From Ascidiella aspersa (lineage: Eukaryota), in the NCBI GenBank assembly GCA_963924565.1, contig OZ004612.1, positions 26,908,001-26,972,000 on the forward strand: a stretch of 64,000 bases of DNA, in the 5' to 3' direction. Each line of letters begins with the position of its first letter. Positions within the stretch are counted from its first letter, which is position 1. Shown here in pieces: positions 23,201 to 64,000 of the stretch. Both the position numbers and the translations under genes were made by a program. The notes below the pieces were generated by a model. That model made no database searches and was not told the DNA's origin. It saw only the letters and a list, made by a program, of their open reading frames with translations.

Positions 23201-24180
23201 AAGAAGAGAAGATGACGCGGATCCGCAAAGAGGTCGAGGCGCTGCTCAACGCCGGCAAACCGGATTTGCGGAAAGCGGCGGCGAAGCGATCGCGTGGCGA
23301 CCACGAGCTGCTCACCCTGGACCGCTTCCGGCGAAAGCGGAAGTCGCGCGGAATCGACGTCGACTCGAGAAGCACTGTAAGCGACGTCACAATTCGGGAC
23401 ATATCGTCGCCAAACGCGAAACTTCAAGATTGTGTTGTGGATCGTATTCCTTCCTCCGTAACTAACAAAATTCAGATGAGTTCCCCAACCAAAAATAATG
23501 ACGTCATATCCGAACACAATGACGTCGCAGTCGACAACGTCATTATCAAAGTGGAACGAGATGAAATTGACTACGACCTTTACCGTGAAAATAAAGCTAA
23601 TCGCTATGACGTCATATCTGGACACGATGTTACCGAGCATAGTGACGCCAAAATCCAGCAAGATGATGTCAGAATAAACTACGATGACGTCAGTGCTGAG
23701 CAAAATGGAATGAGAAGTGAACACGAAGACTTTGAAGCTAGTTACAATGAAGTCGGAGTTGAACAAGATGACGTCATTTCTGAGCACGATGACGTAGTAT
23801 CTGATCACGATGACGTCGAAACGGATTGCGATGACATTGGTGCTGATCAAGATGACGTCAGATCTCAGGAAGATGTTGTGATTAGACGCGATGACGAAAT
23901 CGTCGCTTTAGCAAAACGGAGTCCCGAAAAGGTCGCACTCAATTGCGGAAAAGTGGCGAAACGGAGCAAAGACGCGGTAAACTCGAACTTACGGAAACGG
24001 AAAAGGGCGTCGATGAGGGCCGGTTCTTGCCGCGCGCCACGCCTCGACCTCGTCTACAGGAGCTACCTCGACTCGTTGCAGCCGTCGCCAATTGTTTCTC
24101 GACAATGCGCGCCTCGTGACGTAACAATCATTCCGTGTTCTGTTCGTATTTCCGACGTTTTTTCGTTGAATGTCGCTTAA
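20203..24180 (+). CDS. Uncharacterised large, mostly disordered, probably nuclear protein, paralog 1. Exons 20203-21481 + 21872-24180, ~1195 aa
   Basis: ORFs 20203 (Q-rich) and 21880 join in frame through a phase-1 intron (TCG G|gtgagt ... ttttttcag|AC AGC GAC ATG). The same intron position occurs in both other paralogs. An in-frame TGA at 20137 supports ATG 20203 as the start. RKRKR NLS near the C-terminus. Confidence 0.85.
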
Positions 24181-32700: not shown

Positions 32701-33929
32701 AGAGTCCAACGCCTAAAGAAACCGAAGAACAGGGTTCAAAGATGGAGGTTTCCAGCAGTGAAACACCTTCTGTACGCCCATCGCCCGTCGAACACCAGTT
32801 GAACCACTTTATACAAGCGAAGACATCAGATCAGCATTCCCAGCCGCCACCTGTCAATCAAACAATACAAGAAAGAGCAGCCGAGCAAAGTGAAGACAAA
32901 TCTCAGTTGGCCTCGCCTGTCGATCAATCTGCGCCGCCATCTTGTTCTATCGAGAGCGAAGAAGAGAAGATGACGCGGATCCGCAAAGAGGTCGAGGCGC
33001 TGCTCAACGCCGGCAAACCGGATTTGCGGAAAGCGGCGGCGAAGCGATCGCGTGGCGACCCCGAGCTGCTCACCCTGGACCGCTTCCGGCGAAAGTGGAA
33101 GTCGCGCGGAATCGACCTCTACTCGAGAAGCGCCGTAAGTGACGTCACAATTCGGGAAAAATCGTCAACTGTGAAACATCGGGTTGATGAACGTATTCTC
33201 TCAGTAACTGATAAAGGCCACTCGAGTTCCCCAACCAAGAATGATGTCGTCATATCCCAACACACTGGCGTCACAGCCCAAAACGTCATCGTTAAAGTGG
33301 AACGAGATGAAATAGACTACGACCTTTACCGCGGCACTACAGCCAATCGTTATGACATCACATCGACACACTATGATACCGAACATGGTGACGCGATAGC
33401 CCTGCAAGATGACGACAGAATAGAGTTCTTTGACGTCAGGGATGGGCACAATGACATCAGAACTGAGCACGAAGACTTCGGAGCTAATTACAATGAAGTC
33501 CGAGTTGAGCAAAATGACGTCATTTCTGAGCACGATGACGTCATTTCTGATCGCGATGACTTCGAAACGGATTGTGATGACATTGGTGCTGAAAAAGATG
33601 ACGTCAGATCTCAGCACGATGGTGTGATCAGGTGCGATGACGAAATGGTCTCTTTAGCAAAACAGACTCCCGGTAACGCCTCACTAAATTGCGGAAAAGC
33701 GGCAAAACGGAGCGAAAACGCGGTAAACGCGAACTTGCGGAAACGGAAAAGGGCGTCGATGCGGGCCGGTTCTTGCCGCGCGCCACGCCTCGACCTCGTC
33801 TACAGGAGCTACCTCGACTCGTTGCAGCCTTCGCCCATTGTTCCTCGACAATGCGCGCCTCATGACGTAACAATCATTCCGTGTTCTGTTCGTATTTCCG
33901 ACATTTTTTCGTTGAACACTGTCGCTTAA
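29796..33929 (+). CDS. Paralog 2 of the same family. Exons 29796-31095 + 31576-33929, ~1217 aa
   Basis: Clear end-to-end protein similarity to paralog 1. Phase-1 intron TCT G|gtgagt ... tttttaag|AC AGC AAC ATG keeps the frame. Confidence 0.85.
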
Positions 33930-39419: not shown

Positions 39420-42400
39420 ATGGACATTAACTCGGTAAATCAGTGGCAACATTCGGCCAACAACAGCAACAACAACAGTCACATCATCAGTGAAAGTCAA
39501 GCACATCGCGGCGCACAAAGCAACCCGGCCATCTTTTCGCAGAACGTGGGCTTTTCTAGGAGCTATACACGTCCCTTTCAACCTCCCGCCCATTTCAACA
39601 ACTCTAGCAGAAACCACGATTTTTGCACGTGGAACAACGCAGAATACAACCGGCAGCAGGCCAATTGTAGTCGGCAGTGGCAGAACAACAATGGCCAAAC
39701 CTTCGCCGACCAAACCCAACTAAACCAGCAGACAGGCTACAACGCCAACCAGCAGGTGATCCAGTACAACATCAACGTGGGCAACTTGTCCGACCCGCAA
39801 ACCCACGTGAACCAGTTGGTATGCTTACAAAAACAGCAGCAGCAACAACAACAACATGAACCGCACAGTACTACCCCACTGCAGCTCCAGCACAAAATGA
39901 TGAATGGCCAGCTTTATGAAGTCTACAATCAAAACCCGGTGTCTCTAAACACTCATCAGTTCGTCGGCGGTGTGCGGCACACTATAGCTGATGTACATCA
40001 TGGAACCCTCAGCACCCAGCCGTATTTTCGCAGCAACAACGCGGATTTGTCGCTGAAAAACCACCCGAAAAGTAACCAACACATGAAACCGGTTAAGTAT
40101 GGAAGCAATGTCTGTTATGAGGACAATAAACACATTAACTTGTCGTCCACGAAGCCCTCACCGGTTGTGAAAATCTGCGAACGACAATGTGCTTCTCATA
40201 GAGGGCAGCGTCATCGCTCGTTGCCATCAAATCAACAGCACAGTACTTTTCACTATCGAGCAGCGGTTCCAACACAATACCAACCATCACCCTATCAACA
40301 CGCAGCAATACCAACGCAGAATCAACAACTGCCATCTGCTTATTCAACGATAGCAACTCCGTTCGAACAGCAACCCCGACAGTATTCAACGATACCAACT
40401 CAAAGTCAGCAACTTCCATTGCAGTCTCCATTAAAGCAGCAGTTGTTTAGAGAGCTTCAACAAAAACAAAATCAACCGCGCTATACTCTACAGCAATCAC
40501 AACAAACTGAAGAAATCTCCCCCCAACAAAACCAACGATTCTCCCATACAAATCAACAGGAATCCTTTATAAACCAGCGAGTATCTCCCCAAGTTCCAAA
40601 TCCACCTCCACAATCATCCCCTCGACTTCAACAGGCACGACTTGGTGAGCAGTTGACACTTGTGTTGTCTTCCGGTAATTTATCTTAAGTGCTTAAAACT
40701 AAAAATAAATAGATATTCGACATTAACTATTATTTGCTTGATTAATCTGATGATGGCATAAGAAATTGCCGAAACGTTTGAAAATAAAGCATGTCGCTTT
40801 TAACGTCTATTTGGGCCGTTATTTTCACCATTAAACTTATATCCTATTTATTTGTTAAATTAAAAGTCACTATTTAAAAAAATATGACTTAAATTAATGA
40901 TATATTTTCTTCGATTAAAGGAAGGAATCCCGAAACTACATTTAAACTCTAACACAATTAAATGGATTTGCTAATACCCCTGCTCAGTTGGTAGAGCGAC
41001 GGTCCCGACTTGACCGGAGGTCGTGAGTTCGAACCTCACTGCAGGCTACTTGTTTTCCTAGCCTGCCCTGCTTGCATCATTGATCGACAGATTTGACGAA
41101 GAGTCTGCAATGGCTTTCGGTATACTATTGTTAATACATTGTAAGCATAACTGAACAATATCACGATATACCCTAAACTTTAAACAAATATTAGCGAATT
41201 TAAATTAAGGTCGTTAGGTTAAGGCGGTTTCCAGGTTAAGGCGGTTTCCAAGTTTTTGTGTGTTTGGGGGGATGGACTTTTGTGTTCAGAGCTCGGTACT
41301 GTTGTTTTCTTAACTTCATGTGTTACTCTTTCAGACAGCGACGTGCACAGCACAACAACACGTGCTGACTTTCCTCGCGATTTGACTCTAGACAACCTAA
41401 TAGAGGAAGTGGAAAACTTAAGCAAGCCACAAATAAATCCGAAGGACAAGTCTCAGCATCAGAAGAAGTCGCCGAACAACGAGAACTGCGACGACATCCA
41501 GAACGCCAGCTACATCGCGTTGCAAGGCAAGGTCGATTTGAACAGGTGCAATAGATTAACGTCGCATGAAGCCGCCGCAAAGACTGCAAGAAACAAAACG
41601 TTGCGACAGTCACATTCGCTGGATTTAGAGCCCCAAGACACGATCAACACAACTTTCATGCGATCATGCTCGACAAATACAACAAAGGAGCGAGGTTGCG
41701 ACGACCTCGTGCTGCCGCCAACCGTCTGTCGGTTCCTGGGAAACGACGTCAGACACGTGAGGTCACGCGATTACGTCATGTACTTGTTGTCAAACGACCC
41801 GCGGGTCGCCGAGGCCGCCATAGCTGCGCATCTCCAAGAACGCTTCAAGATGTTCGTGTGCGTCGAATTTCCGCCTAGGAGTCCTTTAAGCGACGGTAGA
41901 GAAACTAAGAAGGCTTTCTGCCTTGTAAAGAACGCGGGCGACGTTTCTTTTATCGTCAACTTGTACTCATGCACCAGTGTACGGATGGTGCTGGTAGTTC
42001 GTAGGATGAACCAGTCCGCCAAAAGAACAGTTCAAAATAATAGACCAATCCCTGAATTGGTTTTAACCACAACAGCAAGGGACAAACGCGAATCACCGAT
42101 TCCATCAGGTTATTTACTGCCCAGTTATTTCCCAGATCTACCAACTGAGCTAGCTATAAATGTCCAGGCGGTTCCAAACCAGGAAACGCCCCCAACACGC
42201 CCCTCGCCCACCAAAGAGCAGCTGAATAATTCCATAAATGAAATTAAAGCGGGGCAAACTGAACCACAAGCTCCGCAGAACTCGTCCATCGTCCACTTCC
42301 TGGGCAATGACTTCAGCGAAGTGAGGTCACGCGATTACGTCATGTACGCACTGTCAGACGACCCGCGCGTCGCTGAGGCCGCCATAGCTGCGCATCTCCA

Positions 42401-43859
42401 CGAAAGCACCAAGATGTTCGTGTGCGTCGAATTCCCGCCCAGGAGTCCGTGGAGCGCCGGCGCCCGTGAAGTACCGAAGAGCTACTTCCTTGTAAAGAAC
42501 GTTCGCGATGTCTTGCGTATCGTCAACTTCTACCCATGCACTAGTGTACGGACAGTGCTGGTCGTTTGTAGGATGAGCCAGAACACCGAGATAAAAGTAC
42601 AACAGACCAGGTCATTCCCTGAACTGGATTTAACAGACGAGGGCAAATCACCGATTCTGTCAGATCTTGTAAGGCACATCCCGGCCTCTGGTCCACCGGC
42701 TGAGCAAGTTACAAGCGTATCCGGGGATGCGCCCCACACAAGCCCCTCTTCCAGCAATCAACAAACCAAGAGTTCAGCCCGGGAAAACACATCACAACGA
42801 GTAAGCCAAAGTTCAAAGGTCGTCGTTTACAGCGCAGAACCGCCCCCTACATGCCCAGGTCCTGTTAATCAACAGCAAAGCAGTCCAAACCCTGAGGAAA
42901 TAAAACGACAAGATTCAAATGTGAATGTTTCAAGCGCAGAACAGCCCACTACTCGCCTCTCACCAACAAAATTGCCGCTAATTAACTCTATACAAGAAAC
43001 TACAGTGGAGCAAAGTGAAGACCAAGTTCACTTGTCCTCATCTGTCAATCAAACTCGGCCGCCATCTTGTTCTATTGAAAGCGAAGAAGAGAAGATGACG
43101 CGGATCCGCAAAGAGGTCGAGGCGCTGCTCAACGCTGGCAAACCGGATTTGCGGAAAGCGGCGGCGAAGCGATCGCGTGGCGACCACGAGCCTCCCACCC
43201 TGGACCGCTTCTGGCGAAAGTGGAAATCGCGCGAAATCGACGTCGACTCGAGAAGCACCATAAGTGACGTCACAATCCGGGACGAAACTCCGCCAACCGC
43301 AAAACTACAAGATTGTGTTCAGAAACGCGTCCTTTCCGCTCCAGCAAAAGAAAAAGCCCAGTCGAGTTCCCCCAAAATAAATGATGACGTCACATCTGAA
43401 CGCGATGACGTCAAGATCGAAAGCGTGATCATCAGGGTGGATCCCAATGATCTCGACTATGACCTTCACCGCTACCTCAATGACAATCCAGTTGACGTTA
43501 AATCTGGTCTTAATGACGTCATAGGCGGGCAAGATGACGCGGGAGCCGATCAAGATGACGTCACAGCAAGACGCGATGACGAAACTAAGCGGTTAAATCC
43601 CGAAATGGCCGCGCTCAATTACGGAAAATCAGCGAATCAAAGCAAAGACGCCGAAATTGTTAACTTACGGAAACGGAAAAGGGCGTCGATGAGAGCCGGT
43701 TCTTGCCGCGCGCCACGCCTCGACCTCGTCTACAGGAGCTACCTCGACTCGTTGCAGCCGTCGCCCATTGTTCCTCGACAATGCGTGCCTCGTGACGTAA
43801 CAATCATTCCATGCTCCGTTCGCATTTCCGACATTTTTTCGTTAAATAATATCGCTTAA
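39420..43859 (+). CDS. Paralog 3 of the same family, more divergent, with the central domain duplicated. Exons 39420-40674 + 41335-43859, ~1259 aa
   Basis: Similarity to paralogs 1 and 2. Phase-1 intron TCC G|gtaatt ... ctttcag|AC AGC GAC GTG. The track's N-terminal extension from 41256 is intronic. Confidence 0.85.
40743..40783 (+). ncRNA. Minimal hammerhead-like motif in the intron of paralog 3
   Basis: CUGAUGA-U-GGCA-loop-UGCC-GAAA-CGUU. Stem I is poorly paired, so it is probably inactive. Confidence 0.45.
40975..41125 (+). mobile_element. tRNA-derived SINE in the intron of paralog 3
   Basis: A-box-like GCTCAGTTGGT and B-box GAGTTCGAACC, with no complete cloverleaf. Homologous to 62297-62520 (-) and 34810-34950. 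Confidence 0.75.
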
Positions 43860-44679
43860 TTCGCCGCATTGTGCGCAAAAGATTTGTTGAAAAAATGTGT
43901 TTGTCTGGAGGTTGTTAAAAATTTTATTTAGATAGTTTAATCAAAAAGCTTTTTATTCACACTATAATAACAAAAATGACTACTGTAGGAACAGACATCT
44001 GGACAAGACCATTCTGTGACTATTGAAAAAGACAACGATACATTCTTCAGAAATTTGATGTCTATAATAACAGCGCCTGTATTGATCTTTGCGGTATTAA
44101 GCCTCAGGCAGTGGATAATTAGTAAATACGGCGTTTAGTGTTACTGGTCTAACTATTATTAACCTGACTAGCCCATGATAGAGGTTATCACGCGGGCTTA
44201 AGCCGTAATAAAACGAGTTATCCTAAGTTCGTATAAGTACAAAAACAATCAAATTCTGCCCTGTATAAATAGTTTTATAATTTGCTAAGCTGGCCAATTA
44301 ACTAATCTGGTAGCTTCCCTAAATGTACCAAAATACTAAAGATACAATAATATCAAATACAGTGACTTCGGTGCACAATCTACCCAGCAGAGACAGAAAG
44401 AAGATGAGTAGCCAGAGCAATTATATTAGTTCCCAAGTCGCTATCGCCATTATAACCCGTTCTCAAAAAGCCTATGGGCTGACCGTACTTTGCTTTTCAC
44501 CTATACTTATCAAACACGCTTACTGTAACTTCACCGTGCGTGCGGCATGTCCCGCTAAGGTTCGTGCAGTTAAAACGTGGCTTTGGGCATGTTGAATCAT
44601 TCATCGTTTACCAATAAGAGCTGCTGGGGGCTCTTAAGCTAGCTTAAAAAATGTCCTGTTATTTACATTCGAAAAATTG

Positions 44680-45690
44680 CAAAAAAGAGCTCCGCTTTTA
44701 GTAAGTCTGGTTGCGACAAAAACTTGATCGCGTACCTGCTGCATTTAAATAGTGTTTTCCACAGCGAGTCATAAGTGTTAAAAGCAAAAGCGACTGCCTT
44801 ACAATCAAGGCTGCGGAGTAGGACTAGGAACGACACCGCAGCCTTGCTTACAATATGCTGTTTTTGGCGACTGTAATAGCCGGTCTAATGACGCAGGGCT
44901 ACGGAGTCGGTAAAATATAACCTGTGAATAAACCTAAGTTTGACTCCCATCAAATGTGCGATGTTTTACGTCCCGCATAGGTCGTCAACAATATAGCAGG
45001 TGTATATACTATAATTATACAGCAATCCACTCATAGAGGTTGTACTTAAGTTTAACCCACAATACAGTGGCTGGAAAGTATGCCACAATACACAGTTGCA
45101 CCTTACAGTTTACAGTTTGCCGAAATGGTATCATGCGCACGTCGGACTCGAGACTCGATTAGTCTTACTCAAGTCCGACTCCGCATCCCTAACAGCAATA
45201 AAAAGGAAATCAAAGCAATTGATATTGAAAGATATCAGCAAGCAAATACGATTCCACCTTTATAATTCACACTTTGCTTATCAGTTTCGAAATTCGGTAC
45301 TGCGCATGCGCACGTCGTATTAGGGACTCGGGTGGTCTTATACTCTCGAGTCCCCAGTCCCAAATCTCGAGGCCTGACTCCGACTCCACAGCCCTTCCAG
45401 GAAGGAAAATGGAATCGAAGTGATATATTTTACACTTTAGCAGCAAGCGGATACGTTAAAATGAAATGTACAGAAATCAATCGTCCGTTTTAAAACCTTT
45501 AAACGGCGACGAATAGAAAGATGATTGAACACGCTTTAACGATGATAGACGTGGTACACGTAAAGATGCTTTATTGACAATGGGACGTAAACCTGCTGTT
45601 GAAAACACGTTTAAATTAACACCACGTCAAATTAATATTTGCTGTGGCACTTTGCTGTACTTTGCCTAATTTAAAACATTTAGCTTTTTG
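44680..45690 (-). pseudogene. Inverted orphan copy of the peptide-gene terminal (3'-UTR) exon and downstream flank
   Basis: 45255-45690 is the reverse complement of ~47830-48265, including the acceptor and AATAAA. 44680-45045 is the reverse complement of ~52830-53085. I found no coding exons attached. Confidence 0.7.
44806..44846. mobile_element. 41-bp micro-MITE of the CAGGGCTGCGGAGTCGG family
   Basis: CAAGGCTGCGG...CCGCAGCCTTG flanked by the 8-bp direct repeat CTTACAAT. Longer relatives at ~6527-6622, ~13254-13337 and ~48125-48397. Confidence 0.75.
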
Positions 45691-46527
45691 ATTCAATACT
45701 GAATTCCTGGCAATTACATGTTAAAGATATATATAGCTGTATATTATTTAAATAGCCCAATGCGTCACAAGACTAACTTACAAGAAAGTTAGTCACATCA
45801 CGGCATGGTATTTCCTTCTTTGCAAAAAGCTGCCAGACACGTTTAAGCGTCATTCAATATTCAAGTGTTTTAATAAACAGGAAATCAGCTAGTGAGAAGG
45901 GTGTAGGGACAAACTGCGATTTCAATTCAGTCTGCAGTTGTGTTTTTCCTGTGAACAGAATATTACTTAAATTAAGAATTTTCGAGAGATTGCCCAGTTC
46001 ATAATTTGACACAAATGATTTGACTTGACTTGAGTTTTATAAATAAATAACTGGTGTCTAAAGAAAGGTTTCCTTAAAACAAAAGTGTTTTTAAAAAAAT
46101 TTTGTTATAAAATTGACTTATTCGTCTCAACTTTGTACCAAAAACAATTTGCTTGCTGCACATTGCGTTTGGTTATTTTTAGTTAAGTAATTGTTCACAG
46201 TCGGACGAGTTTATCAGTTTTATTAGTTTAACGTTTTATTTCAATTCTTTTTATGTCAATGACTGGACTTTAAATAAACTTCTTTAATAATAAGTTGCCT
46301 GGGACTTGTTGTGTTTTGCACATGACTTGACTTGGACTAAATTCGTCTCAAAAGAAGTTGTATACAACGTTGGTCCTACCACATGCGTTATGCTAAAACG
46401 AGTTAAATACTATGATGACGTTGCTTGTATCTTTCAGTGATAAATCATAACTTCAAACAACCATCCGACTTTAAGCAAATTAAGCTCTTTCTGTTGACTT
46501 ACAACGTTATAAGTAGGCCACAGCGAA

Positions 46528-47514
46528 ATGAACAAGCTGTTTTTTGTTGCTGTTGTGTTTGCTGTACTCTTGATGCTGGTAGAAATAGCGATGTCTCAAA
46601 ATCGCGGGTGGGTAAGTTGGGCATTTACATAAAGATTGTAATCGCATTGCTTTATTTTGACCCTATGAACGGACATAAGGCTTACGTGATCGCGCTTCTT
46701 ATTGAAGAAAGTATAAAGATGCGAGAAAACAAGTATAAGGTTCACAAACACGGAATACACGCTAGAATTTTACTGGCGCTGCGATATCTTTATTTTGACT
46801 ACCCAATGTTTTCTCGGAACTCTTGGTACAAAGTTGACTTGGCTATGTTGCCTTATACCTTTATGTGATAAATTACCTCACCGTTTTCAAAAGGTTGCAA
46901 ATTACTATTAAAGTCAAAATGACATGACTTTGGCTAAAGCCATTTAAATTAACCCTGGCCCAAAGTACCGCACTTTAATCATTGCCCTCTCATAATGTAA
47001 ACAAAATTGTCTTACAAACTTTCAGCGGCCAATACGGTAAATTCAATAGACTCGGCGAACCAGTAGACGATGACGACAAAGGTTTCATGGTAAGTTAAAG
47101 CTAATGCGAATACTATTGGAGGCTATTGCTCTGCTTAATAAACTAGGTCTTAAGAGGCACATTTATGTAGTTCCTTGAAAATAAATTATCAAAACGTATT
47201 TATTCAGATATGTCGATTTACTAGACCTTTTGAATTTGCCGTTAATTTTCAAGCTACATTACATTATTGGTGCATACTGTACACATTTAAGACATCATTT
47301 TCATAATTATAACTGACGGATAAAGTTTATTGTATAACAATATACACGTGTTTTCTATCCGAATTTGACTTGTCTTTTGTACCACCTAAGCTGTTTAATG
47401 TTTTCTGCTATCGGGAATTACAAAACTCAATCTTTCAAAGGTTAAAAATTAAAACATTGCCGATTTTTACAGGCAAATCTTGGATTCGGAAATGATTTTA
47501 ATTTGGGAGATTAA
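46528..47514 (+). CDS. Small secreted prepropeptide, copy A (61 aa): MNKLFFVAVVFAVLLMLVEIAMS-QNRGGQYGKFNRLGEPVDDDDKGFMANLGFGNDFNLGD. Exons 46528-46607, 47026-47089, 47473-47514
   Basis: Hydrophobic signal peptide. Exon sizes and phases match copies B and C. The model needs the GTGGGT donor at 46608 rather than GTAAGT at 46612. 3'-UTR intron from 47538, last exon ~47932 with AATAAA at 47949. Confidence 0.7.
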
Positions 47515-49526
47515 TAATCATCAAACCATCAAACTGTGTAAGTCAAACTTCTGTTTTATTCACCTATAATTTCAACATATATGAATTTTGCTTAAATTGA
47601 ACTAACTCAACTCAATATTATGAGCTAAGTGATTAATCACGTGATGTGGCTTAAATGAAGTTTAGCATATTTGTAACACAAACTAAATAAAGTAGAAATG
47701 GAACGCCTAAAGTATTGTCAATTCTGCATGAATTTTGATAAGATAAGCAAAACTAATAGAAACAGTATTGAGTCATCTATATCTTTAGCATGTAACTAAA
47801 TCAATCAAACAAAAAAACAAATGTATTTTATCGAAAAGCTCAATGCTTTTGTTTAGGCAAAGCACAAGTGCCACAACCCATTAAAAGTCATATTTGTCGT
47901 GGTGTTAATTTAAACGTGTTTTCAACAGCAGGTTTACGTCCCATTGTCAATAAAGCATCTCTACGTCTACCGCGTCGTCGCTAAAGCGTGTTCAACCATA
48001 TTTTTCTACATCGCCGTTCAAAGGTTTTAAAACGGACGATTGATTTCTGTACATTTCATTTTAACGTATTCGCTTGCTGCTAAAGTGTAAAATATATCAC
48101 TTCGATTCCATTTTCCTTCCTGGAAGGGCTGTGGAGTCGGAGTCAGGCCTCGAGATTTGGGACTGGGGACTCGAGAGTATAAGACCACCCGAGTCCCTAA
48201 TACGACGTGCGCATGCGCAGTACCGAATTTCGAAACTGATGAGCAAAGTGTAAATTGTAAAGGTTGTATTGCCTATAGTGAAATATTTTCCAACCAGGAA
48301 ATTTGGTGATGAGCATATTTGCATCGGACTCCAGACTCGGGTAGTTTTACGCAGTATTACTAAAGTCCCAAGTACCGACTCCCAATCCGCAGCCCTGACT
48401 GTAAGGTAGCAGTTTTTGCATTTTATCACTTATGACTTGCTGTGTAAAACATAATTATTTAAATGTGATTGTTTTACGATCATGTTTGTTTCGCAGCCCA
48501 ACTTCCTAAAAGAGAAGCTATTCTCTATGTTTTGACTGTAAATAAAATCTCGACCTGGAAATATTTACGTTGAAATTTCGAGACAGTCTGAACGGTGATT
48601 ATTATCTTCCTTGTTATTATCACCAGTTCACAAAACTGAAGTAATGGCCAAATTAATTTCTTTGTTATCCTTGACATTATACCGTTGTACACGTATTAGG
48701 GCGAAATACTTTATAATCAAAATACTAAAGGAAACAATGATAGTAAATACAGTGACTGTTACATTTAATAATTGGATTAAATAACTAAACACATTCGAGT
48801 CACAAAGACATGAAATTTGTCTAAATGACTTAAGTTAGGCCAAGTAAGTTCATTTACAAGACTTATATCAAGTCAAGTCTTAAGAAAACAGTGGCTTAAG
48901 TGCACCATAAGTCAAGCTTTTGGCATACCCATTATAGCACTATTACCAAGCCATATTACGTAACAGGAGGCAATCAATGTTAAAGCAAATATAATTTAGT
49001 TTTATCCCAAAACACTTAATCCAGTTTTTGCTATACATTTTTCCTAATACCGATATAAAATAGATTTTCGAAACTATTAAGTAGCCTATACTCCTGTGAT
49101 TTTAGGGAACACCTTGAGGTCGGCGGTCCCATTAAAAATCATGATTTATGCTGCATAGCAGTCTATAGGCCTATAACACTGAAAGTTCGGCTTTCATAAT
49201 ATGACTGCCACATAAATAGTCGTTCACGTTTATCGTCTTGTGCGTGGTTCAGAAAACTTCAAATAGCCCAACGCGTCATTACAAGAAAGTGAGTAGCAGC
49301 ACGGAATGGTCGTTATTTCTTAGAAAAAAGTTGCCAGACACGTTTAAACATCGTTCATCATACAAGTTTCAAACAGGAAATCAGCTTGAATGAGTGTTGC
49401 TAGTGGAGGAATAAGGGTTAACAGCGATTTCAATGCAGTTGACAAGAAATGGGGTAGAGAAATGTCAAAAGGCTTAGGTAGAGAAATGTAAAAAGATGCC
49501 TTACCCAGTGCAGTCATGACTTAGAT

Positions 49527-50043
49527 CAGGGGTGTGCAACCTTTCACACTGCCGGGCCAAATATGTGTATTCGTATTAGACCACGGGCCACTTCCATATA
49601 TTTCGACTACCTGTTAGTGACTATCACGAAAAGAAAACCATTTCGTTTTTAGTTTACTGCGAATCAACGGAAAAGATTTTAAAATCATTTTTTTTAATTT
49701 TAAAGTTGGCTTGCTTTCCCAACCACGATATCCAGGTTTACTTGAATTAAGTTTTGGCAACCCGGAGTCCATTTTTAAAGTGTACATTAGTCAGTTCTGG
49801 CCGATGAGGGGATTTGATAAGCCCGAGTTCAGAAAAACTTTTTCACACACGTACATTGAACCGAACAATGCCATCTTTAAAGCGACAAAATTTCTCAACT
49901 GTGGAAACTTATTGAGATAACTTATTCTTTATTGAGACCAATTTTTATTATACTATTGTTATATGGACCACAGGTAGCTATTCAAAAGCATTTCAAGAAC
50001 AAAAAATTTGCAGCGCTTAGTGCAATCAGGTTGCACGCACCTG
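49527..50043 (+). mobile_element. hAT-like MITE upstream of peptide gene B
   Basis: CAGGGGTGTGCAACCT ... AGGTTGCACGCACCTG termini. Perfect TSD ACTTAGAT. Confidence 0.9.
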
Positions 50044-50581
50044 ACTTAGATCAATGACTTGAAATAAGTTCATTTAAAGACACCAATTTCAATGACTTGA
50101 ATCGATACAAATATTTGGACTAAAATGAATTGACTTGACCCAAGTCATTTTGACGACAACTATAGGTTTAAAATAAAATCTAATTATTTTTTTTGTATTT
50201 TTTTTTATGTTTTTTTTTTTTCTAATTATTTTTTTTGTAATATAATAGACTTGTTTGTCTCAAATGTTGTACGTAAAACAAAATTTAACTACGATTTGTC
50301 TGTTTTTTTAGCTCAGTTATTGCTTATATAGTCGGCCGCATTTATTACTTTTATTAGTTTACAAGAGGACTTCTTCAATAATGACTTGACTTGGACTAAA
50401 TTAATTTCAAAATAACTTGTGTACAACACTGATCCTATCACATGCGGTATGGTAAAACTAGTTAAATACTATGATAGCGCTGCTTGTGTACTTCAGTGAT
50501 AACTCATATTTTTAACCAAACATCCCATTTTAAGCTGGGTAAGCTCTTTTTATTGAGTTACAACGCAATAAGTACGTCGAA

Positions 50582-51839
50582 ATGAACAAGCTGGTTATTG
50601 TTGCTGTTGTGTTTGCTGTAGTCTTGATGTTGGCAGAAATAGCAATGTCGCAAAAACGGGGGTAAGTTGAGTTTTTGCATCGCTATATTTTATCCTTTGT
50701 ACGTACAGAAGGCTACGTGATATTAGCGCGCTTTCTAACTGAATAAAGTATAAAGATGCACGAAAATCAGTTTAAGGTCCACCAATATGGAATACACGGT
50801 AGCATTTTACTTGTGCTGCGATATCTCTATTTCGACTACCCTAGGTTTTCTTGATACTCTATAGCTACAATGTAGACTTGGCTATGTTGACTTATACCTT
50901 TACCGTATGTGCTATATCACCTCACTGTTTTCAAATAAGTTCAAATGATTATTAAAGGCAAAATGACATGAATTTAGCTAAAGCCATTTGAACTTAATCC
51001 CGGACCAAATGCACCGTTTGTTGATAATTGCCTTCTCATAATGCAACCTATGTTATTTTACAAACTTTGTTTAACCTTTAGCGGCCATTACGGGAAATTT
51101 GACAGATTCGGCAAACAAGGAGATGGTTATCACAAGGACTTCATGGTAAATTGATAAATGCAAATGCTATAAAATCCATCGCTGTATTTGTAGTTAAACC
51201 AGGAGGAACTGCCGGTTGGAAGTAATAACGTCGTCTTACGAGACACACTTATATAGCCGGAAAATGATTGTCAAAGCTAAATAAAGACGTTGAGATGCGG
51301 ACTGGTATCATCATCATTAGTCGTATCATTACCGCTGTACCTGCTTTAACACGTGAATGTGCTAGTTAATGCTCTCCGAATGATTAGAAACTTTAAAAGA
51401 AAATAATTGCGGTTCACATTTTATAACGGAGGTTGAAAAGATTTCAGTCACAATAACTGATGATGATACAAGCTCGTATCGAAACGTCTTTTTCAGATGA
51501 TGTCGATTTACTCGACCTTTTTGGATTTGGCATTAATTTTTAAGCTACATTACATTAATAGTTCATATTATACTTCTACAAATAAATTTTTATATGTTTA
51601 TTAACTCACCGATTAAGTGTTAAGTTTATTGTATAACAATATAAACGTGTTTGCCATCCGAATTTTTCTCTTCCTTTGCACCACATAATCGGTTTAATGT
51701 TTTCTTTGACGAAAGTGGTATCGGAAATTCTAAATATCGCATCGACGACACTCAATTTTTCAAATGTTGAAAATTAAAAAATTGCCGATTTTTACAGGAA
51801 AATCTTGGATTCGGAAATAATTTTAATTTGGAAGATTAA
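50582..51839 (+). CDS. Small secreted prepropeptide, copy B (61 aa): MNKLVIVAVVFAVVLMLAEIAMS-QKRGGHYGKFDRFGKQGDGYHKDFMENLGFGNNFNLED. Exons 50582-50661, 51082-51145, 51798-51839
   Basis: Canonical splice sites (GG|gtaagt, ctttag|C, ATG|gtaaat, tttacag|GAA) give an open frame ending in TAA at the homologous position. UTR intron from 51860, last exon 52275 with AATAAA at 52292. Confidence 0.8.
51452..51492 (+). ncRNA. Minimal type-I hammerhead motif in intron 2 of peptide gene B
   Basis: AAUAA-CUGAUGA-U-GAUAC-AAGCUC-GUAUC-GAAA-CGUC-UUUU, with a perfect 5-bp stem II. A core-mutated relative lies at ~8462-8507. Confidence 0.6.
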
Positions 51840-52632
51840 TCAGCAAACCATCAAACTTCGTGAGTTAAACATCTGTTTTAGTGACTTATGTTACAACATG
51901 CACTTTTGCATTTATTAAAGCTAACTAACTCAACTCAATATTATGGGTTGCGGAATTAAGTGATTATTAACGTAATATGGCTCAAATGGAGCAAATGGAG
52001 TTATTTGTAACACAAACTAAATAAAGTAGAAATGAAACACCTAAGAGTGTCAATTCTGCATACCTTGCATTAGGATAAGATAAGTAAAACTAATAGAAAC
52101 AGTATTGAGCCATCTATATCTTTAGCATGTAACTAAATCAATCAAATAAAAAACAAGTTTCAGGATTTCAGTATTTAATCGAAAAGCTCAATGCTTTGGG
52201 TTAAGAAAAGCTCAAGTGCCACAATTTATTTAGTCATATTTGTCGTGGTGTTAATTTAAATGTGTTTTTAACAGGTTTACTTTCCATTGTCAATAAAGCA
52301 TCTTTCCGTGTACCACGTCTATCATCGTTAAAGCGTGTTCAATCATCTTTCTATTCGTCGCCGTTTAAAGGTTTTGCAACGGAAGGTTCATTTCTGTAAA
52401 TTTCAATACAGCTTACTCGCTTGCTGCTAAAGTTTAAAATCGATCACTCCAATTTCTATTTCCTTGCTGGCAGGGTTGCGAAGTGGGGACATGGAAAATG
52501 AGTAAGGCATCTTAAGAGTACCAGAGTTCCGAGTTCGACGCGCGCGTGCGCAGTACCAAATTTCAAAACTAACAAGCAGACTGTAAATTGTAAACAGACT
52601 GTAAATTGTAAGAGAAAATGCATTAAAACGCA

Positions 52633-52715
52633 ATTAGTACACCGAAAGCCATTGCAGACCCACCGAATCTGTTGATATATTCGGTGAAGCCGCAGTGGCT
52701 TTCGGTGTACTAATT
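52633..52715. repeat. Short hairpin/inverted repeat
   Basis: AATTAGTACACCGAAAGCCA ... TGGCTTTCGGTGTACTAATT. Single arms also occur at ~17215, ~25945 and ~41105. Confidence 0.75.
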
Positions 52716-54545
52716 ATACGTAAGCCGTAATCGTTGGTCAAAAAGCAGCTTCAGAAGGGCTAGACCTCAGTGGTTAATGTGTGTTCATGTGTCATTGAAT
52801 CATGTATTGTTGGTATTAAATTCATATGACACCTCTATGAGTGGATTGCTGTATATCCACCATGACGCAAAACATCGCACATTTGGTGTGAGTCTTACTT
52901 GGTTTTTATTTTTATGGCCGTAGTCAAACTCCGGAATTGTACGCAGGTTATATTTAACCGACTCCGCAGCCCAGCGTTGTTAGGCCGGCCATTTCGTTTT
53001 ATTACTTATGGCTCGCTGTGGAAAACACTTCTATTTAAATGCAATACTTGTCACAGCCGAACTTACTAAACGCGGAGCTATTCTCAATATTTCCAACGTG
53101 AAAAAAATCTCGTAATCTAACAATACGCACAGTTCGTTTAATATCGATTTAATTCAGTCAACTAAGTTCAAGTGAAGTCTTTTTTAATAAATAATAAGTC
53201 AAATTATAATTACGGGAATCAACTACAAGTCAAGTCCTTGTCATGAAAAGTCAAGTCATCCAAAAACAGTTACTTAAATACACTAAAGTCATGTCAATAA
53301 GCGATTTGCAGCGACGTGAATTACCAGAGGATGTTCGTGTGGAAAATGTTTGCGTGTACAGGAAATAGCTTGCATGTTTTGGAATGAATCCAACATCGTT
53401 TTCGTCTTCGTTAGTAAAATAGCATTACAGTAACGCGCAAAGAACAAAACTCATGTAACATGGCTTTTAACTGTTTTGTGTTCGAAACAGTTTCAAGCGC
53501 ACACAAAGTATTATATTTGTTGGTGAATATAATAGAAGTTTATCAAGCAGCACAACGGCTTTTTACGGCTGTAAAAAAGCTGACTAGTTCAATTTAAGTT
53601 AACCTTGGATTTTCTTACTTGTGAAATGTGTTTATGCAGTTGACAAATAGTTTGTGTGTTAAACTTCGCACATAACGGCCTAACATTTGTAAATAAAAGA
53701 TAGTTTAGACCTGGCTTATGCGGGTTCTCCAATGCCTATTGCAGTTGAACTTTGCACATAAGCAAAAAAGACTATTCCCTGGTATACAGTGTATAATTTA
53801 GAGTTATAATTTAAATTTCCGAATTAAATGCATAAAGTTGTAAGTGCACTACTATACGTTAATAAACGTTACTTCATGACATTCAACTTGCATTGGTGTC
53901 TTGTTTGTTTGAGACAGACATATTTCTTTAGCGAAATAAATTGTTAAATGAGATTTGCAATTTATTACTCGGAAAATATGAAAAAATAAATCTAAGCTAT
54001 CACTTGCATAATTTGAATAAAACACGCGTTTTAACACACACAGTAGTAAATTTTTTTCGGCGATTTGCGCGAATCGTATTTATAGTTTTCGGGGAGTGTT
54101 TAGATATATGCTGTCCTTTATATAAGAACAGAATAAAGGGCCTTGTTCAAATTGTTATTTTTTTCAACCTATAACTAGATGTAAAAAGCATTATATGGCT
54201 CTCATGGACATACAACCAAGAACATTTGGCTTTTATGGCTCCCTTGGCTAAAGAGGTTCCTGACCCCTGTCTTAGAGAAACACTGGGGTATGGGAACAGA
54301 ATTGCGTTTTTCTCTGTAAAAATCACCGTGACACGTTTAAACTTTTACTCCGAATTCTAACAGCAGGAAGCCATTGTGAGCTTCGAAGGATGTCGGTCTG
54401 TAGCACAAGTTACTCGCGTTAATAGCGAATAAACCAACACAATTTGCAGTTACGCATTAGTTATGAAGAACGAGTTTAAGTCGCTCCAGGAGAACATTTC
54501 GCGGAAATACGAGTTTCAAGAAAAGAATTATCACATGCGTTAATA

Positions 54546-54864
54546 CAGTGCTTCTCAACCTATGGGTGGCTGTTTTATTTGGTTGGGTCGCCGACCGCAG
54601 TATAGTCACATGTTTATACTAATTGAGGTTGGTTCTGAGAACATTTTTTCTTAAGAAAATTAAGGAAGCAATACAAATAATGTCTTGTAATAATTATTAA
54701 AATTATAAATTATTTTTGCTAGTGCGTATTTTTTGTTCACTTACAAGAAGCTAGTTTTTATTTCGCTTACAAGAAAACAAAAAAAAAAATTGGGTCGCCA
54801 AAGCTTAGTCGTCATACTTCCGGTTAATATTTGGGTCGCCGCGAAATAAGGTTGAAAAGCACTG
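54546..54864 (+). mobile_element. hAT-like MITE in the promoter of peptide gene C
   Basis: CAGTGCTTCTCAACCT ... AGGTTGAAAAGCACTG termini. TSD CGTTAATA/CGTTAACA. Confidence 0.88.
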
Positions 54865-54992
54865 CGTTAACATATAACAAGATTATTATTTTCGTGGTAA
54901 TTGATTGGTCATTTTAGTAATAATTATTCAATCAGATGATTTTTTTATCTAGGTAAACAAATCTATTTAGCTTACAAGCTACCCACATCGAA

Positions 54993-55728
54993 ATGAACAA
55001 ACTGGTATTTGTTGCTGTTGTGTTTGCCGCCCTTTTGATGCTGGCAGAAATAGCAATGTCGCAAGGAGAGTAAGTTCTGCATGGAATTAAATGCTAGAAT
55101 TAAATCAACTGGCAAGCTTATACCTTTCTGTTAGATTTGAATACCTGTATGGTAGTAGTGCGCTTTTTAACCAACTTCGTAAAATAAAATATGCAAAAAA
55201 TGTAAGGCCGCCCAATATTGAACACCTTAACATGGTGGCTAGTTCAAAACCTCCAATCAATTGACGCCAAGGCTACTTAAACATAAACGCACCCACATCT
55301 TGATTTAAACATGGTCGACTTGAGTGTTGAATCAAAAATGCATGACTATGTCTTAAGTCATTTCGGACCATAATTAACCCTTTTCGAAATGCAGTGTGGA
55401 ATACTTAACAAACTTGCTGTTTTACCTTTTAGAGGTGGTTTCGGTTTGATGGACAGACTAAGCAGACCAAATGATTACTACAGAGGCTTCATGGTGAGTT
55501 ACTATACTTACACTACTGTACTGTACTTCAAACAAGGAAAAACTGTCAGTACAAAAGCGATGAAGATATCGTATAAGTTTAGATCATTAAAACCTCCTAT
55601 CTCACTTATTGTTAGGTATGTTTCAAACAATGCAAGACATGCTTGATGCTTGTTGTTTTTTAAATCACAAACATATTTTTTTACAGGAAGAAAATGAGTT
55701 CGAAGATAATATTATTCTCGGTGATTAA
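54993..55728 (+). CDS. Small secreted prepropeptide, copy C (59 aa): MNKLVFVAVVFAALLMLAEIAMS-QGEGGFGLMDRLSRPNDYYRGFMEENEFEDNIILGD. Exons 54993-55069, 55433-55493, 55687-55728
   Basis: GA|gtaagt, ttttag|A, ATG|gtgagt, ttacag|GAA. Phases 2 and 0 are conserved with copies A and B. UTR intron from 55749, last exon 56291 with AATAAA at 56308. Confidence 0.8.
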
Positions 55729-58099
55729 TTACCGAACCATATAACGTCGTAAGTATGTATCATTTAAATTACATCATACTTCTTAAAAAACATAAACTAA
55801 TTGAATTTTCTATTATGAGTTGATGGATTAAGTGATAAAGATTAAAATTAAGTTTGATATATGTTTGTTGGTTGTATATAAGCTGCATTAAATCAAGTAA
55901 TAGCGAAAAGTGATATTCTACTGACTTGAGTAATTTTCGGTTTACTAATTTCTGTACTTAGTATTATTAATATTTGTCATTGATGTAAAAAGAAAATGGT
56001 TTGTTTTTCACCATTCGTATTCAGGCAAATTTTTTTACTTGAAATAAAATGGTGACTTTGTACAAACACGAAATTTAAACACGAAAAACAAAAGTTAAAA
56101 AACTAACATCTCTTTAATTTATAAAATGCCGTGTATTTAAAAAGAATCTCAACGCATGATGCAACCTTTGTAAATCAACCACAAGTTCACTGTTTAATCA
56201 AAGAGTTGAGTGTTGTAATGCCAGCAATGAACGGCATACGCCACAATCTATATAATGACTCGCGTTTTCTATGCATATTTGTTTAAACAGGTTCACCATT
56301 CATCGCCAATAAATCATGTTCATGAGTTCCCTTTGGTCGTCGTTAAAAAGCTTGTTCAACCATTCATTTAGCACTGATTCACGCTTAAACGCTGTAACGA
56401 ACGAATAACGTCTATGATCTGGATGAAGCGTATTCGATTGATAAAGTAGTAAATCATTTCCATTTATTTCCTTTTTTTATTTTTATTTTCCTTGACCTAG
56501 CTGCCTAAACCAGTCACAACAGAACTTTTAACACCCGAATGTTAACACAGTTGTCTTATTTTGTATCCTTTTATGCTATCTGTACTCTGTAGAATCATAC
56601 TTGTTTGTATTAGCTTGGCGCTGTAGGCTAATCAATGATAGAGGAGCTGTGTTGAATTTTCGAATTTAATTTGGATTCCTCAATCTGGCAATACGCACGT
56701 TGAAATGTCGAGATAGCCTATTTAATTCTAAGTGGATGAAGTCAGATAGATAACTTGCTTTAATATTCAGTCAACAGCGCTTTATAACTGGCTAAATTCA
56801 TTTCGACGTCATCAATAATGTATTTAACATTGGAAATTTGCACCCCCGATGTATATATCATATCTCTTTGTACATCAAGAAAGACAGAAGAACATCAAAA
56901 TGTTTAAACTTAAATCTCCTATAAGCTTAAGTAGACGAAACCACAATAGTAAAATATATTGAATCTGATAACGCCTGAAATATAAGTGACCGGTCAAACA
57001 GATGTAAGTCTGTTGTTTGTAACTCCCTGTCGCAATTTAAAATAGTTAAAAATATTTTCGTGATAAAATTGAGCGTTAACCATTTACCGCAACCCGCTGC
57101 TTTCTTCCTTTGCTTAAATGTTGTTTTCGTTTGGCTTTTTTAAAAGTAAGCTATTCCATTCTGCTAAGTATGGTTTTTGGTTGCAAGACCCATAAGCTTC
57201 CAATCTTGTCGTGTTTTGTAAAATACCGACTTATTGAGACGTGAATTACCAATTGGTGTTCGTGTAAAGCAAATTGTGTCGACAGGAAATAGTTTGCACG
57301 TTTTGGCATGAATTCAACATTGCTTACGTCTGCATTAATAACTAGCATTAAACAGTAAAGCACAAAGTAAAAAAACAAACATGTAACGTGGCTTTTTATT
57401 TTGCGATTAAGTTATCACTAAGTTGTACTTTGTGATAGAAACTAATGCAATTTACCTTTGCACATGCGACCCCTGCCATTGCGTTATTGTGTCTCATTAA
57501 AAGTTATTTTTCAAGATTGCTGCATTGAATACATACAATAGATTGTAAAACTGCCTTACTGTGTTTAGCTACGTTAATAAAGTCATTTCCAGTCGTTCAA
57601 CATGTACTGGTGTCTCGTTTGTTAGAGACAGGCGAACTGTTTAATTAGGTTGAAACGCCTTGATACCTTGCAATGCTCAGTAAAATCACCAAGGGGTTAA
57701 AATAAATGTATGTAGAACGGCTTTTTAAAAACAGTAATGACCAATAAAAACACTTTAAATGTGTAAGTACATAGAGGATCAAAACACGTTGGTTGAAAGG
57801 CAAACTTGTATAAAGTTTGTTGGAGCCCACTCTTAAGACTTTGTTAATTTCAACTTTAGCAATTGGCATGGAAATTAGCAAACTGATATTTATTGATTTC
57901 TCCGGCTCCGATGTTGCTAGAAAAAACGAATAAGTTGCTTCACGTATAAGTACTACATTATATTGGGGCTCATGGTTGGCAAAAGTCCTACACGCCTAGT
58001 TATAAATTCTTTATTTACTTGTCTTTTACGTATATCCTGTAATCCAAAAACCTAATGCATTAGGCGAGTAAACATTCCCTTAAACGTCTCCTCGCATTT

Positions 58100-62131: not shown

Positions 62132-63894
62132 ATGTTGAGTGCTTTGATTGTTGCTTATCTACTGAATAGCGTCCAAGCCGATCTGGACTTCAAACAAATC
62201 GGCAGAACTTCCAATGGCCGACCACAGATTTCGAAGCGGGACCCTCAAATGGTGAATATACAGAAACGTTGTTTGAGTGAAAAATTTATCCAATCTTGTA
62301 TGTATGTGTACTGTGTTATCACGACCTTCTGGAGTCGTACTTAGCTAACGATAACGGCACACCGGATGCCTTCGGAAAGGTTTATCGAAATCAGACGGCT
62401 GGGGCAGGATTATAAGGCAAGAAAAGTCAGGCTTTAAAAACAACTAGCCTGCGGTGCGGTTCGAACTCACGACCTCCGTTCGTAGCTGTACCGTCTCTCT
62501 ATAAACTGAGCTACACAGGCTCTGAGGAAAACACGTCGAGAAACGACCATAGCACCATTGTCTACTGCATCCACTATAATGTAGTACAATTGCGGGTTAT
62601 ATATAATAAGGTTATGATGAAGATATCAATCTGAAGAATTGTACTTTGATCTTCCTAGTTCTGAACTAGGCACGTACGTTATGTGTGAACTGGACGACGC
62701 TAGCGTTTTGCGCCAGACGCTAACGCTAAACAAAACGCGTCTAGAGTGAACCAAACAAAACGCGTCTAGTGTGAACCAACCTCAAGGGGTCGCGGAACGT
62801 AAACGTTTCAACATGGTTTCATCGATTCCTATTTTTCTCTAAAAACACACTGGTTTATAGAACAAAAAGAAGGACTAACTGACTGTTTCAAATTTCCTTC
62901 CAACCTTTGGGGGTCGCGAAACCAGACGCTAACACTAACGCCAAAGAAAACGCGTCTAGTGTGCACCAACCTTAAGGTGTCGCATAACTATTTAGTTAAT
63001 TTAGTTAGCTAGGTTATACTGTGCGTTAAAGTAAGTCTGCATCCATATTTAAAAAGGTTAATTTTCTAAAAATACAAAATTTACCGGCACACTTGACAAT
63101 ATCTATAGAGGTACACAGTATGCCACGACAAACAATTAGAGATTAGCTGCTTTGTGGACTTTACACCTTTTAAACTCTACAACAAGATACATTGAGTGAC
63201 CGTTGGGTTTTCTTGGCCGCCTATTACAGGTATTCACATGGTTAGGATTCATTGAGAATGGCTCTGAACAAGTTTCGCCAATACTCTAGTAAATTGTAGA
63301 AGCAATGCAAAGACATGACGCATATTTATTAAATTTAAAATTATTTATTATAATGTATTATATTTTGTTCGCTTACAAAAAGTTCAGCGAAGAGAATTAT
63401 GTCACCAAAGCTTCGCACTTGTGGGACGCGTACCACAGGTTGGATGTTTGGAACCACTGCTCTAAGGTTACGGGTTTTTTTGGCAACCGCTTGATAATTA
63501 CTCTTGTCATTCGTATTACAAGAAACCATTTTTTTTAAACCAACCTGGCCTAGATATTTCGAACAACAAATAGTACACCAGTAGTACAAAATGGTTCGAG
63601 TGACGTTATGGTTGATCAAAACTGACGACTTCAAGGTGGCTAGATCACAGTCGATCTCTTATGCATGAATGTTTTTTTTATTATTTTCAAACAGGTTAGA
63701 TCAGCATCAGTGGCCATCCCACCTACACAGAACTCTTTTGCGAGCGTGTATTACAATGTCGGCTTCCAGATATCCTGCTACCAGGGATGGTATTACAACA
63801 TCGACACCATCACCAACATAATACTCTGGTATGGCAAGTATGGTTGCTGGTGCGGACTTGGCGGAAGCGGTTCCACAGTGGATGAAATTGACAG
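62132..63894 (+). CDS. Secreted phospholipase A2 (group I/II/V/X-like fold), 5' part only. Exons 62132-62251 and 63695-63894; the gene continues beyond the window
   Basis: Exon 2 encodes YGKYGCWCGLGGSGSTVDEIDR, the sPLA2 Ca2+-binding loop, and ends in a phase-2 donor (GAC AG|gtttgt) just before the expected CCxxHD. Exon 1 encodes a signal-peptide-like N-terminus and a KR-containing propeptide and joins in phase 0. The exon 1 assignment is less certain than exon 2. Confidence 0.85.
62297..62520 (-). mobile_element. tRNA-derived SINE in the PLA2 intron
   Basis: Reverse complement reads GCCTGTGTAGCTCAG...GGAGGTCGTGAGTTCGAACC..., with a body ending in a short ACAT-repeat tail. Confidence 0.75.
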
Positions 63895-64000
63895 GTTTGT
63901 TACCATGCAAAATGCCTGGAATTGGGTAGCTTAAAATGTCAAATTGTATCAGAATGGAAAAATGTTGGATTTCGAAAACATATACGTATGTATTTATTTG

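Follow-up and report, generated by a model that had tools for sequence, protein, structure and literature searches.

A 64,000-nt stretch of the genome of the ascidian Ascidiella aspersa (assembly GCA_963924565.1, contig OZ004612.1, positions 26,908,001 to 26,972,000 of the forward strand; hereafter, the window) contains, between 46.5 and 56.3 kb, three co-oriented tandem copies of one small gene, designated g1, g2, and g3. The explanation favored here, with a confidence that is clearly better than even and well short of certainty, is that these are secreted-peptide genes forming a divergent branch of a family of ~40 genes with a common MNKL signal exon, some of which look like antimicrobial-peptide precursors. 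The genes were initially noticed from the sequence alone and taken for a probably undescribed family of three. The claim of novelty has held, in that no Pfam family, protein collection, or paper searched contains the trio sequences; the count of three has not, since 40 matches to the signal exon were found genome-wide. The trio is not isolated, being a divergent, non-cationic branch of this ~40-gene signal-exon family.

Gene structure, conservation, and expression of the trio

All three genes lie on the plus strand, with start codons at positions 46528 (g1), 50582 (g2), and 54993 (g3) of the window. As the original prediction had proposed, each could be rebuilt from the sequence as four exons, of which the three coding ones are very small (80, 64, and 42 nt in g1 and g2; 77, 61, and 42 nt in g3). 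All intron borders are GT..AG, and the phases are the same in each copy, with intron 1 in phase 2 and intron 2 in phase 0. By the exon sums, the pre-peptides are 61, 61, and 59 residues long in g1, g2, and g3, respectively.

Coding exon 1 of g1 (46528..46607) encodes the predicted signal peptide, three further residues, and two nucleotides of a split codon. It is followed by coding exon 2 (47026..47089; 64 nt, entered in phase 2 and left in phase 0), which is rich in Gly, aromatic residues, and Asp and has a net charge of -2, and by exon 3 (47473..47537), which carries 13 codons, the stop codon (47512-47514), and 23 nt of 3' untranslated region (UTR) ahead of a GTAAGT donor. The 3'-UTR exon spans 47929..47975, with an approximate 3' end and an acceptor at 47928 or 47931, and contains AATAAA at 47949-47954. 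In g2, the 80-nt coding exon 1 (50582..50661) ends at a GTAAGT donor, coding exon 2 (51082..51145; 64 nt) has a net charge of +1, exon 3 (51798..51859) holds 13 codons, the stop codon (51837-51839), and 20 nt of 3' UTR before a GTGAGT donor, and the 3'-UTR exon (52275..52320, 3' end approximate) has AATAAA at 52292-52297. The corresponding parts of g3 are coding exon 1 (54993..55069; 77 nt, donor GTAAGT), coding exon 2 (55433..55493; 61 nt, net charge +1), exon 3 (55687..55748; 13 codons with a net charge of -6, stop codon at 55726-55728, 20 nt of 3' UTR, donor GTAAGT), and the 3'-UTR exon (56291..56335, 3' end approximate; AATAAA at 56308-56313). The anticipated 3'-UTR intron is therefore present in every copy, its donor located 20-23 nt past the stop codon, and AATAAA lies ~20 nt inside each last exon. 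Under the 50-55-nt rule, a splice junction so near the stop codon would not trigger nonsense-mediated decay.

Upstream of each ATG, at a distance of 13-18 nt, is an ATAAG(T) or CAAG motif (within 46506-46527, 50563-50581, and 54976-54992). It is also found in the relatives on chromosome 6 described below, and the g2 copy equals the last six bases of the ascidian spliced leader. The motif may act in trans-splicing, as an acceptor, or as a start-site element.

The window has the base composition of AT-rich animal DNA. At the local composition, a 60-codon open frame would arise by chance with P ~0.011 per gene, and the window has exactly three copies of the conserved 17-mer of the signal region, where 0.3 loose matches would be expected. 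Searched as DNA or as a single protein, the signal exon has three occurrences in the 308.6-Mb assembly. The g1-g2 alignment spans the whole locus at ~76-79% identity, with 79% in the introns. Exons 1 and 3 are 89% and 92% identical, above the intron level (p ~0.02 each), whereas exon 2, at 73%, is at or slightly below that level and does not diverge significantly faster. The g3 copy is alignable to the others only in exon 1 (87%), in exon 3 with its UTR, and in the last exon; it is an old copy, yet the start, the stop, the splice sites, and the phases have all been kept. The ratio of nonsynonymous to synonymous substitution rates (dN/dS) of the signal peptide against g3, a comparison suggested with the original prediction, is ~0.12 (Fisher p 0.004-0.008), which indicates purifying selection on the signal peptide even against this old paralogue.

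The predicted signal peptide is nearly invariant, as had been noticed: 18 of its 23 columns are identical across g1-g3, and a Gln comes next in all three. A Lys lies close to its start, its hydrophobic core is 15 residues long, and positions -3 and -1 are occupied by Ala and Ser. Lying wholly on exon 1, the signal would target the pre-peptide to the secretory pathway, and cleavage after Ala-Met-Ser would leave Gln at the N terminus, where it can form pyroglutamate. The predicted mature parts (38 residues in g1 and g2, 36 in g3) contain 17-21% Gly and no Cys, and their net charges are -3, 0, and -6. Their acidic, Cys-free tails, also part of the initial description, are 13 residues long with net charges of -2, -3, and -6. 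The middle exon had been described as Gly-rich, aromatic, basic, and fast-diverging, and only the first two attributes survive; with net charges of -2, +1, and +1 it is not basic, and its divergence is at about the intron rate. At the peptide level, the exon 2 segments of the other two copies are 52% and 45% identical to that of g1. Nor is exon 2 freely variable: six columns are invariant in g1-g3 (Gly1, Gly4, Arg8, Asp14, Phe20, and Met21), and several others change conservatively. Among features of single copies, only g2 has an Arg-Phe-Gly-Lys site and, following the Gln, a Lys-Arg pair, and g3 carries Tyr-Tyr-Arg-Gly-Phe-Met followed by acidic residues. Each gene would accordingly be expressed as a four-exon mRNA of ~250-280 nt, translated into a pre-peptide of 59-61 residues, and the 36-38 residues secreted would lack Cys, abound in Gly, aromatic, and acidic residues, and probably be disordered.

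Reads from one RNA run of the same species label, of which ~6% was read, and from two DNA-like runs were aligned on 50330-56329, which covers g2 and g3. RNA depth over g2, by bin, is 1.24 in exon 1 (reaching 3 at position 50644), 0.65 and 0.23 in exon 2 (from three reads with three different starts), 0.54 in exon 3, and 0.16 in the last exon, and intron-only bins are without RNA depth except at a repeat inside intron 2. The first mate of the g2 exon reads is always on the minus strand, which in most stranded libraries denotes plus-strand RNA. Summed over exons 1-4, the coverage is ~248, 176, 108, and 32 nt; these amounts would fit three to four spliced 151-nt reads (exons of 80, 64, 62, and ~40 nt) and not unspliced ones, and g2 is probably spliced at exactly the predicted sites. 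The proposed check of the junctions against RNA came out favorably in one respect, the confinement of sense depth over g2 to exon bins. The RNA reads and one DNA sample share T>C changes at 51100 (synonymous) and 51107 (Phe to Leu) in exon 2 of g2, and a G>A change at 55702 in exon 3 of g3, seen in another DNA sample, replaces Glu with Lys. No indel was present in the g2 and g3 coding exons among the contigs listed for two other DNA samples.

Very high-copy repeats lie at 51330-51529, 52530-52929, 54130-54329, 54530-54929, and 55930-56129, with summed contig depths of 2e3 to 2e5 against ~30-100 in the flanks and with RNA reads on both strands. The first of them lies within intron 2 of g2 and explains the length of that intron, 652 nt compared with 383 nt in g1.

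The MNKL signal-exon family and its chromosome 6 branch

All sequence searches were run exon by exon. A profile made from the three exon-1 frames alone, compared with the six-frame translation of the same genome, retrieved 36 further matches, confined to the signal part, with relatives on other chromosomes at expectation (E) values of 6e-5 to 0.03. A refined profile, A4 (24 columns, 11 members), gave 40 matches at E <= 1e-3, values that are partly circular in that 11 of the members built the profile. The matches are clustered on four chromosomes: 14 at 0.86-2.44 Mb and the three of the window at 26.95 Mb on chromosome 6, 11 at 30.13-30.19 Mb on chromosome 2, seven at 1.83-1.86 and 4.08 Mb on chromosome 8, and five at 7.40-7.42 Mb on chromosome 3. 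DNA and single-protein searches of the genome returned no copies beyond the three, the wider family being visible only by profile.

The superfamily matches open with ATG and MNKL and have a hydrophobic core much like that of the trio. A phase-2 donor follows 71-89 nt after the start in 26 of 30 loci, a range to which exon 1 of the trio (80, 80, and 77 nt) conforms, and exon 1 is 80-87% identical in nucleotide sequence between chromosomes, with flanks that are not alignable. Because the ATG start, the phase-2 donor, and the exon-1 identity agree independently, the superfamily is supported despite the circularity of the E values. Behind the same signal exon, the other clusters carry dissimilar exon-2 peptides, including one encoded by a 49-nt exon common to copies on chromosomes 8 and 3 and a Tyr/Gly/Lys-rich one at locus L045. 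The family plan would then comprise a homologous MNKL signal exon, a phase-2 intron just past the cleavage site, and an exon 2 that is short and varies greatly; the trio and the chromosome 6 branch also have a recognizable short tail exon.

Some members look disabled. In five members on chromosome 2 (L049-L053; G000:C2:30139108-30179164), GTG replaces ATG, and these are interleaved with intact copies; a member on chromosome 3 (L044; G000:C3:7410596) has an in-frame TGA within the signal. Apparent single-exon members on chromosome 8, with open frames of 66 residues, were discarded as upstream read-through only.

The branch at 0.86-2.44 Mb of chromosome 6 appears to contain the closest relatives of the trio, and these have the build of ascidian antimicrobial-peptide precursors. 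Their exons 2 and 3 were placed by conservation between paralogues (loci L025-L029, L035, L039, L046, and L047). Exon 2 is 58-76 nt long, runs from phase 2 to phase 0, and in L026 has the 64 nt of g1 and g2. It opens with a Gly run followed by Gly-Lys-Leu-Glu/Gln-Arg-Ile, and its net charge lies between +3 and +6; several members have an exon 2 that clears the numeric cut-offs of a study of helical antimicrobial peptides in Ciona (PMC7387483). Exon 3 encodes a nearly invariant 22-residue tail that starts with Glu-Glu-Asn and contains Asn-Asp-Phe-Asn, and its GTAAGT donor overlaps the stop codon or lies just past it. The comparable motifs in the trio are Gly..Gly-Lys-Phe-Asp/Asn-Arg-Phe/Leu in exon 2 and Glu-Asn/Glu..Asn-Asp/Asn-Phe-Asn in exon 3. 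The order, phases, and sizes of the exons match between the two groups, and the lengths of intron 1 are alike. In contrast to the cationic exon 2 and the 22-residue tail of the chromosome 6 relatives, the trio has no net positive charge and a tail of 13 residues. Profile-profile comparison with hhalign gave P values of 0.018 for exon 2 and 0.012 for exon 3. Together, these resemblances make homology across all three coding exons probable, though not proven; the trio would have retained the scaffold of its cationic relatives and lost their positive charge.

Near the L026 gene, ~3.4-4.4 kb downstream of it, lies a tandem repeat of ~66 nt (L055; G000:C6:1903000-1912999, minus strand), which also occurs in L054 at ~3980-4290. 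It reads as Pro/Thr-rich (Pro-Pro-Ala-Asn-Met-Thr-Pro-Thr-Thr..) and is open in several frames, being either a minisatellite or a mucin-like exon.

Known peptide precursors and possible roles of the trio

Some animal peptide families place a conserved signal before very different mature peptides and are arranged in tandem clusters, as in the dermaseptin-type precursors of frog skin and the toxin superfamilies of cone snails. Their sequences and taxa are unrelated to the trio, in which the conserved unit is a separate micro-exon. Closer parallels come from ascidians. A screen of Ciona for linear cationic helical antimicrobial peptides found that most precursors run from a signal through a cationic helix to an anionic region and that signals are conserved within families (PMC7387483). 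It also described a new family of six candidates with a common 23-residue MNK-type signal; low micromolar concentrations of a synthetic peptide of its named member KH.S921.1 acted against microbes, and both KH.S921.1 and KH.S1531.4 have Cys-free cationic cores whose peptides are antimicrobial (PMC7387483). Like the trio, the Ciona MNK family consists of small, Cys-free ascidian precursors with several paralogues, a short or weak acidic tail, and a signal far better conserved than the mature part. The two signals are both 23 residues long and agree at positions 1-3 (Met-Asn-Lys), at Leu14 and Leu17, and at Glu19, the last of which is present in the trio and in the clusters on chromosomes 2 and 3. 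This resemblance to the Ciona MNK signal would serve as a lead and not as a test. The Ciona MNK peptides are strongly cationic amphipathic helices with measured activity, whereas the Gly-rich peptides of the window range from neutral to anionic.

The Ci-MAM/Ci-PAP, clavanin, and styelin precursors share with the trio the order of a signal, an active middle, and an acidic C-terminal piece. This piece starts with Glu or Asp at the boundary in styelins and clavanins (PMC7387483), as it does at the presumed boundary in g2 and g3. Their signals are unrelated to those of the trio, whose middle part has a net charge of -2 to +1 and is not predicted to be helical. The Ciona screen required a precursor of 50-100 residues with a signal, a Cys-free mature part, an 18-residue window with a net charge of +3 to +10, a hydrophobicity of 0-0.6, and a hydrophobic moment of 0.1-1.0, and an anionic C-terminal region of -3 to -10 (PMC7387483). 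The trio agrees with it in precursor size, in the N-terminal signal (judged by residue features), and in the lack of Cys. One window across the exon 1/2 joint of g2 reaches +3 by hand count, with six of its 18 residues Gly, and the tail charges of -2, -3, and -6 refer to 13 residues, fewer than the 18-residue window of the anionic criterion. The layout of a host-defence precursor assigned to the trio at the outset has gained support from the superfamily, the cationic chromosome 6 relatives, and the Ciona MNK family, but its cationic core has not, the mature charges being -3, 0, and -6 and no exon-2 window reaching +3.

Wider searches gave no named family for the trio or its relatives. Pfam contained none for any exon peptide, and Rfam none for positions 44000-58000. 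A word-indexed protein search with the open frames of g2 exon 1 and L026 exon 2 gave no candidates, a blank that, given the length window of that search and the tendency of gene callers to overlook such genes, does not speak for absence from other species. No relevant match emerged from a profile search of 1.84 billion representative proteins, signals of 23 residues being near its detection limit. One hit of the latter, P0001, is irrelevant, aligning solely with profile positions 2-16, which are non-coding flank of the query. Literature searches in full text returned only an unrelated rotavirus paper for the trio peptide strings and only the Ciona consensus for those of the superfamily.

Several observations weigh against the favored explanation. 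Neutral-to-anionic mature peptides with 17-21% Gly do not pass the cationic amphipathic-helix criterion, and the 18-residue windows of exon 2 fall short in charge (-2 in g1, +1 to +2 in g2, and +1 in g3). Only six of the 15 defined positions of the Ciona consensus match, by inspection of the printed consensus, and the searches run retrieved no homologue in any other species. Beyond exon 1, homology to the chromosome 6 branch consists of weak similarity together with the matching order, phase, and size of the exons, and composition-preserving pairwise shuffles of exons 2 and 3 gave p values from 0.005 to 0.45; the partial circularity of the A4 E values belongs here as well. In the ~6% of the RNA run that was read, no g2 splice joint was among those listed under a three-read rule, and g3 had zero reads. 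Finally, g1 has four extra bases just before intron 1 compared with g2, and two donors 4 nt apart, a weaker GTGGGT at 46608 and a consensus GTAAGT at 46612. Only with GTGGGT is the frame kept; GTAAGT would cause a frameshift with a stop after four exon 2 codons. Since g1 relies on the weaker of these tandem donors, it may be partly or wholly disabled.

One alternative is loss of function: the trio could be decaying or functionless offshoots of the superfamily, with g2 transcription residual and the peptides without a role, in line with the out-of-frame consensus donor created by the 4-nt insertion in g1, the lack of g3 reads, the divergence of exon 2 between g1 and g2 at about the intron rate, and the loss of the cationic character of the relatives. 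Such decay would nevertheless have left three open frames with start, stop, splice sites, and phases intact, at the low chance probability per gene given above, a signal peptide under purifying selection against g3, a conserved exon-2 scaffold and tail, and coding exons without indels in two further individuals, as far as their contigs were listed, and it is regarded as improbable. Marginally more probable, though still unlikely, is a signalling role, in which the genes would encode a neuropeptide, hormone, or pheromone precursor and the conserved mature residues would be a receptor-binding epitope. The six invariant residues of exon 2 amount to more position-specific conservation than is usual in membrane-active peptides, and the N-terminal Gln of all three copies, the Lys-Arg after Gln and the Arg-Phe-Gly-Lys site of g2, and the low RNA level in a bulk sample all suit this explanation. 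The neuropeptide option offered in the original prediction is nonetheless disfavored by the absence of conserved processing sites, as basic cleavage sites and a Gly-plus-basic amidation signal are found in g2 only, and the apparent nearest relatives resemble defence-peptide precursors.

Two specific forms of this explanation were rejected. An Arg-Phe-amide (RFamide) peptide from g2 would use a site that is missing from g1 and g3, and its Phe is variable, being Leu in the RNA sample and in one DNA sample. The motif of cholecystokinin (CCK) and cionin is a C-terminal Gly-Trp-Met-Asp-Phe followed by Gly and dibasic residues, with a sulfatable Tyr upstream; the likeness of g3 to these peptides lacks the amidated C-terminal motif, and no trio copy has an Asp-Phe-Gly-dibasic end. 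A role as precursors of heavily modified small peptides, of the type containing dihydroxy- or trihydroxyphenylalanine (DOPA/TOPA) and resembling tunichromes or plicatamide, or as minor tunic or adhesive components, seems the most remote. Ascidians make such modified aromatic peptides, and the lack of Cys and abundance of Gly, Tyr, Phe, Asn, and Asp would be suitable. No sequence feature points to it specifically; there is no repeated short unit and no known precursor for comparison, and the conserved positions span the whole peptide.

Within the favored explanation, it is tentatively suggested, at somewhat less than even probability, that the trio encodes secreted effectors of host-defence lineage whose activity has moved away from direct membrane attack; part of the remaining probability goes to other secreted roles. 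A broader proposal, held to be a little less probable again, is that the ~40 MNKL genes constitute an undescribed host-defence system common to distant ascidians and homologous to the Ciona MNK family, in which one micro-exon provides for secretion and the exon after it is swapped or rewritten freely; the trio would then be a defence-peptide scaffold converted to a non-cationic secreted peptide that has taken on a different function, for example as signal, regulator, or anionic partner. Innate immunity is the defence on which ascidians rely, and these animals yield antimicrobial peptides that tolerate salt. Gene predictors may overlook genes built of 42-80-nt micro-exons, and the protein collections searched contain no match to them. 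One short signal-exon profile retrieves ~40 such genes and may offer a practical handle on the repertoire across tunicates, and the trio may provide a natural experiment: a defence-peptide gene minus its positive charge that still appears to be under selection.

Other features of the window and genome

The ascidian identity of the genome is borne out by the 16-nt ascidian spliced leader, which occurs 623 times in it, compared with 0-1 occurrences of a reversed control, and part of these occurrences lies in tandem arrays of 584-bp period. Such arrays, with the exact spliced leader, are located at G000:C3:5242219-5294152, and copies are scattered on other chromosomes. They are presumably the gene cluster for the spliced-leader RNA.

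Upstream of the trio, the plus strand of the window carries three tandem copies of a GC-rich gene, ~10 kb apart, at 20203-24180, 29796-33929, and 39420-43859. Each contains two long open frames, of ~420-450 and 770-870 residues, with no Pfam match. Downstream of the trio, at 63665-63931 (plus strand), an open frame contains the Ca-binding loop of secreted phospholipase A2 (PF00068, E 1.1e-6, 29.5 bits). The score falls just under the cut-off because a single exon is covered, and a gene for this enzyme likely begins at the end of the window.

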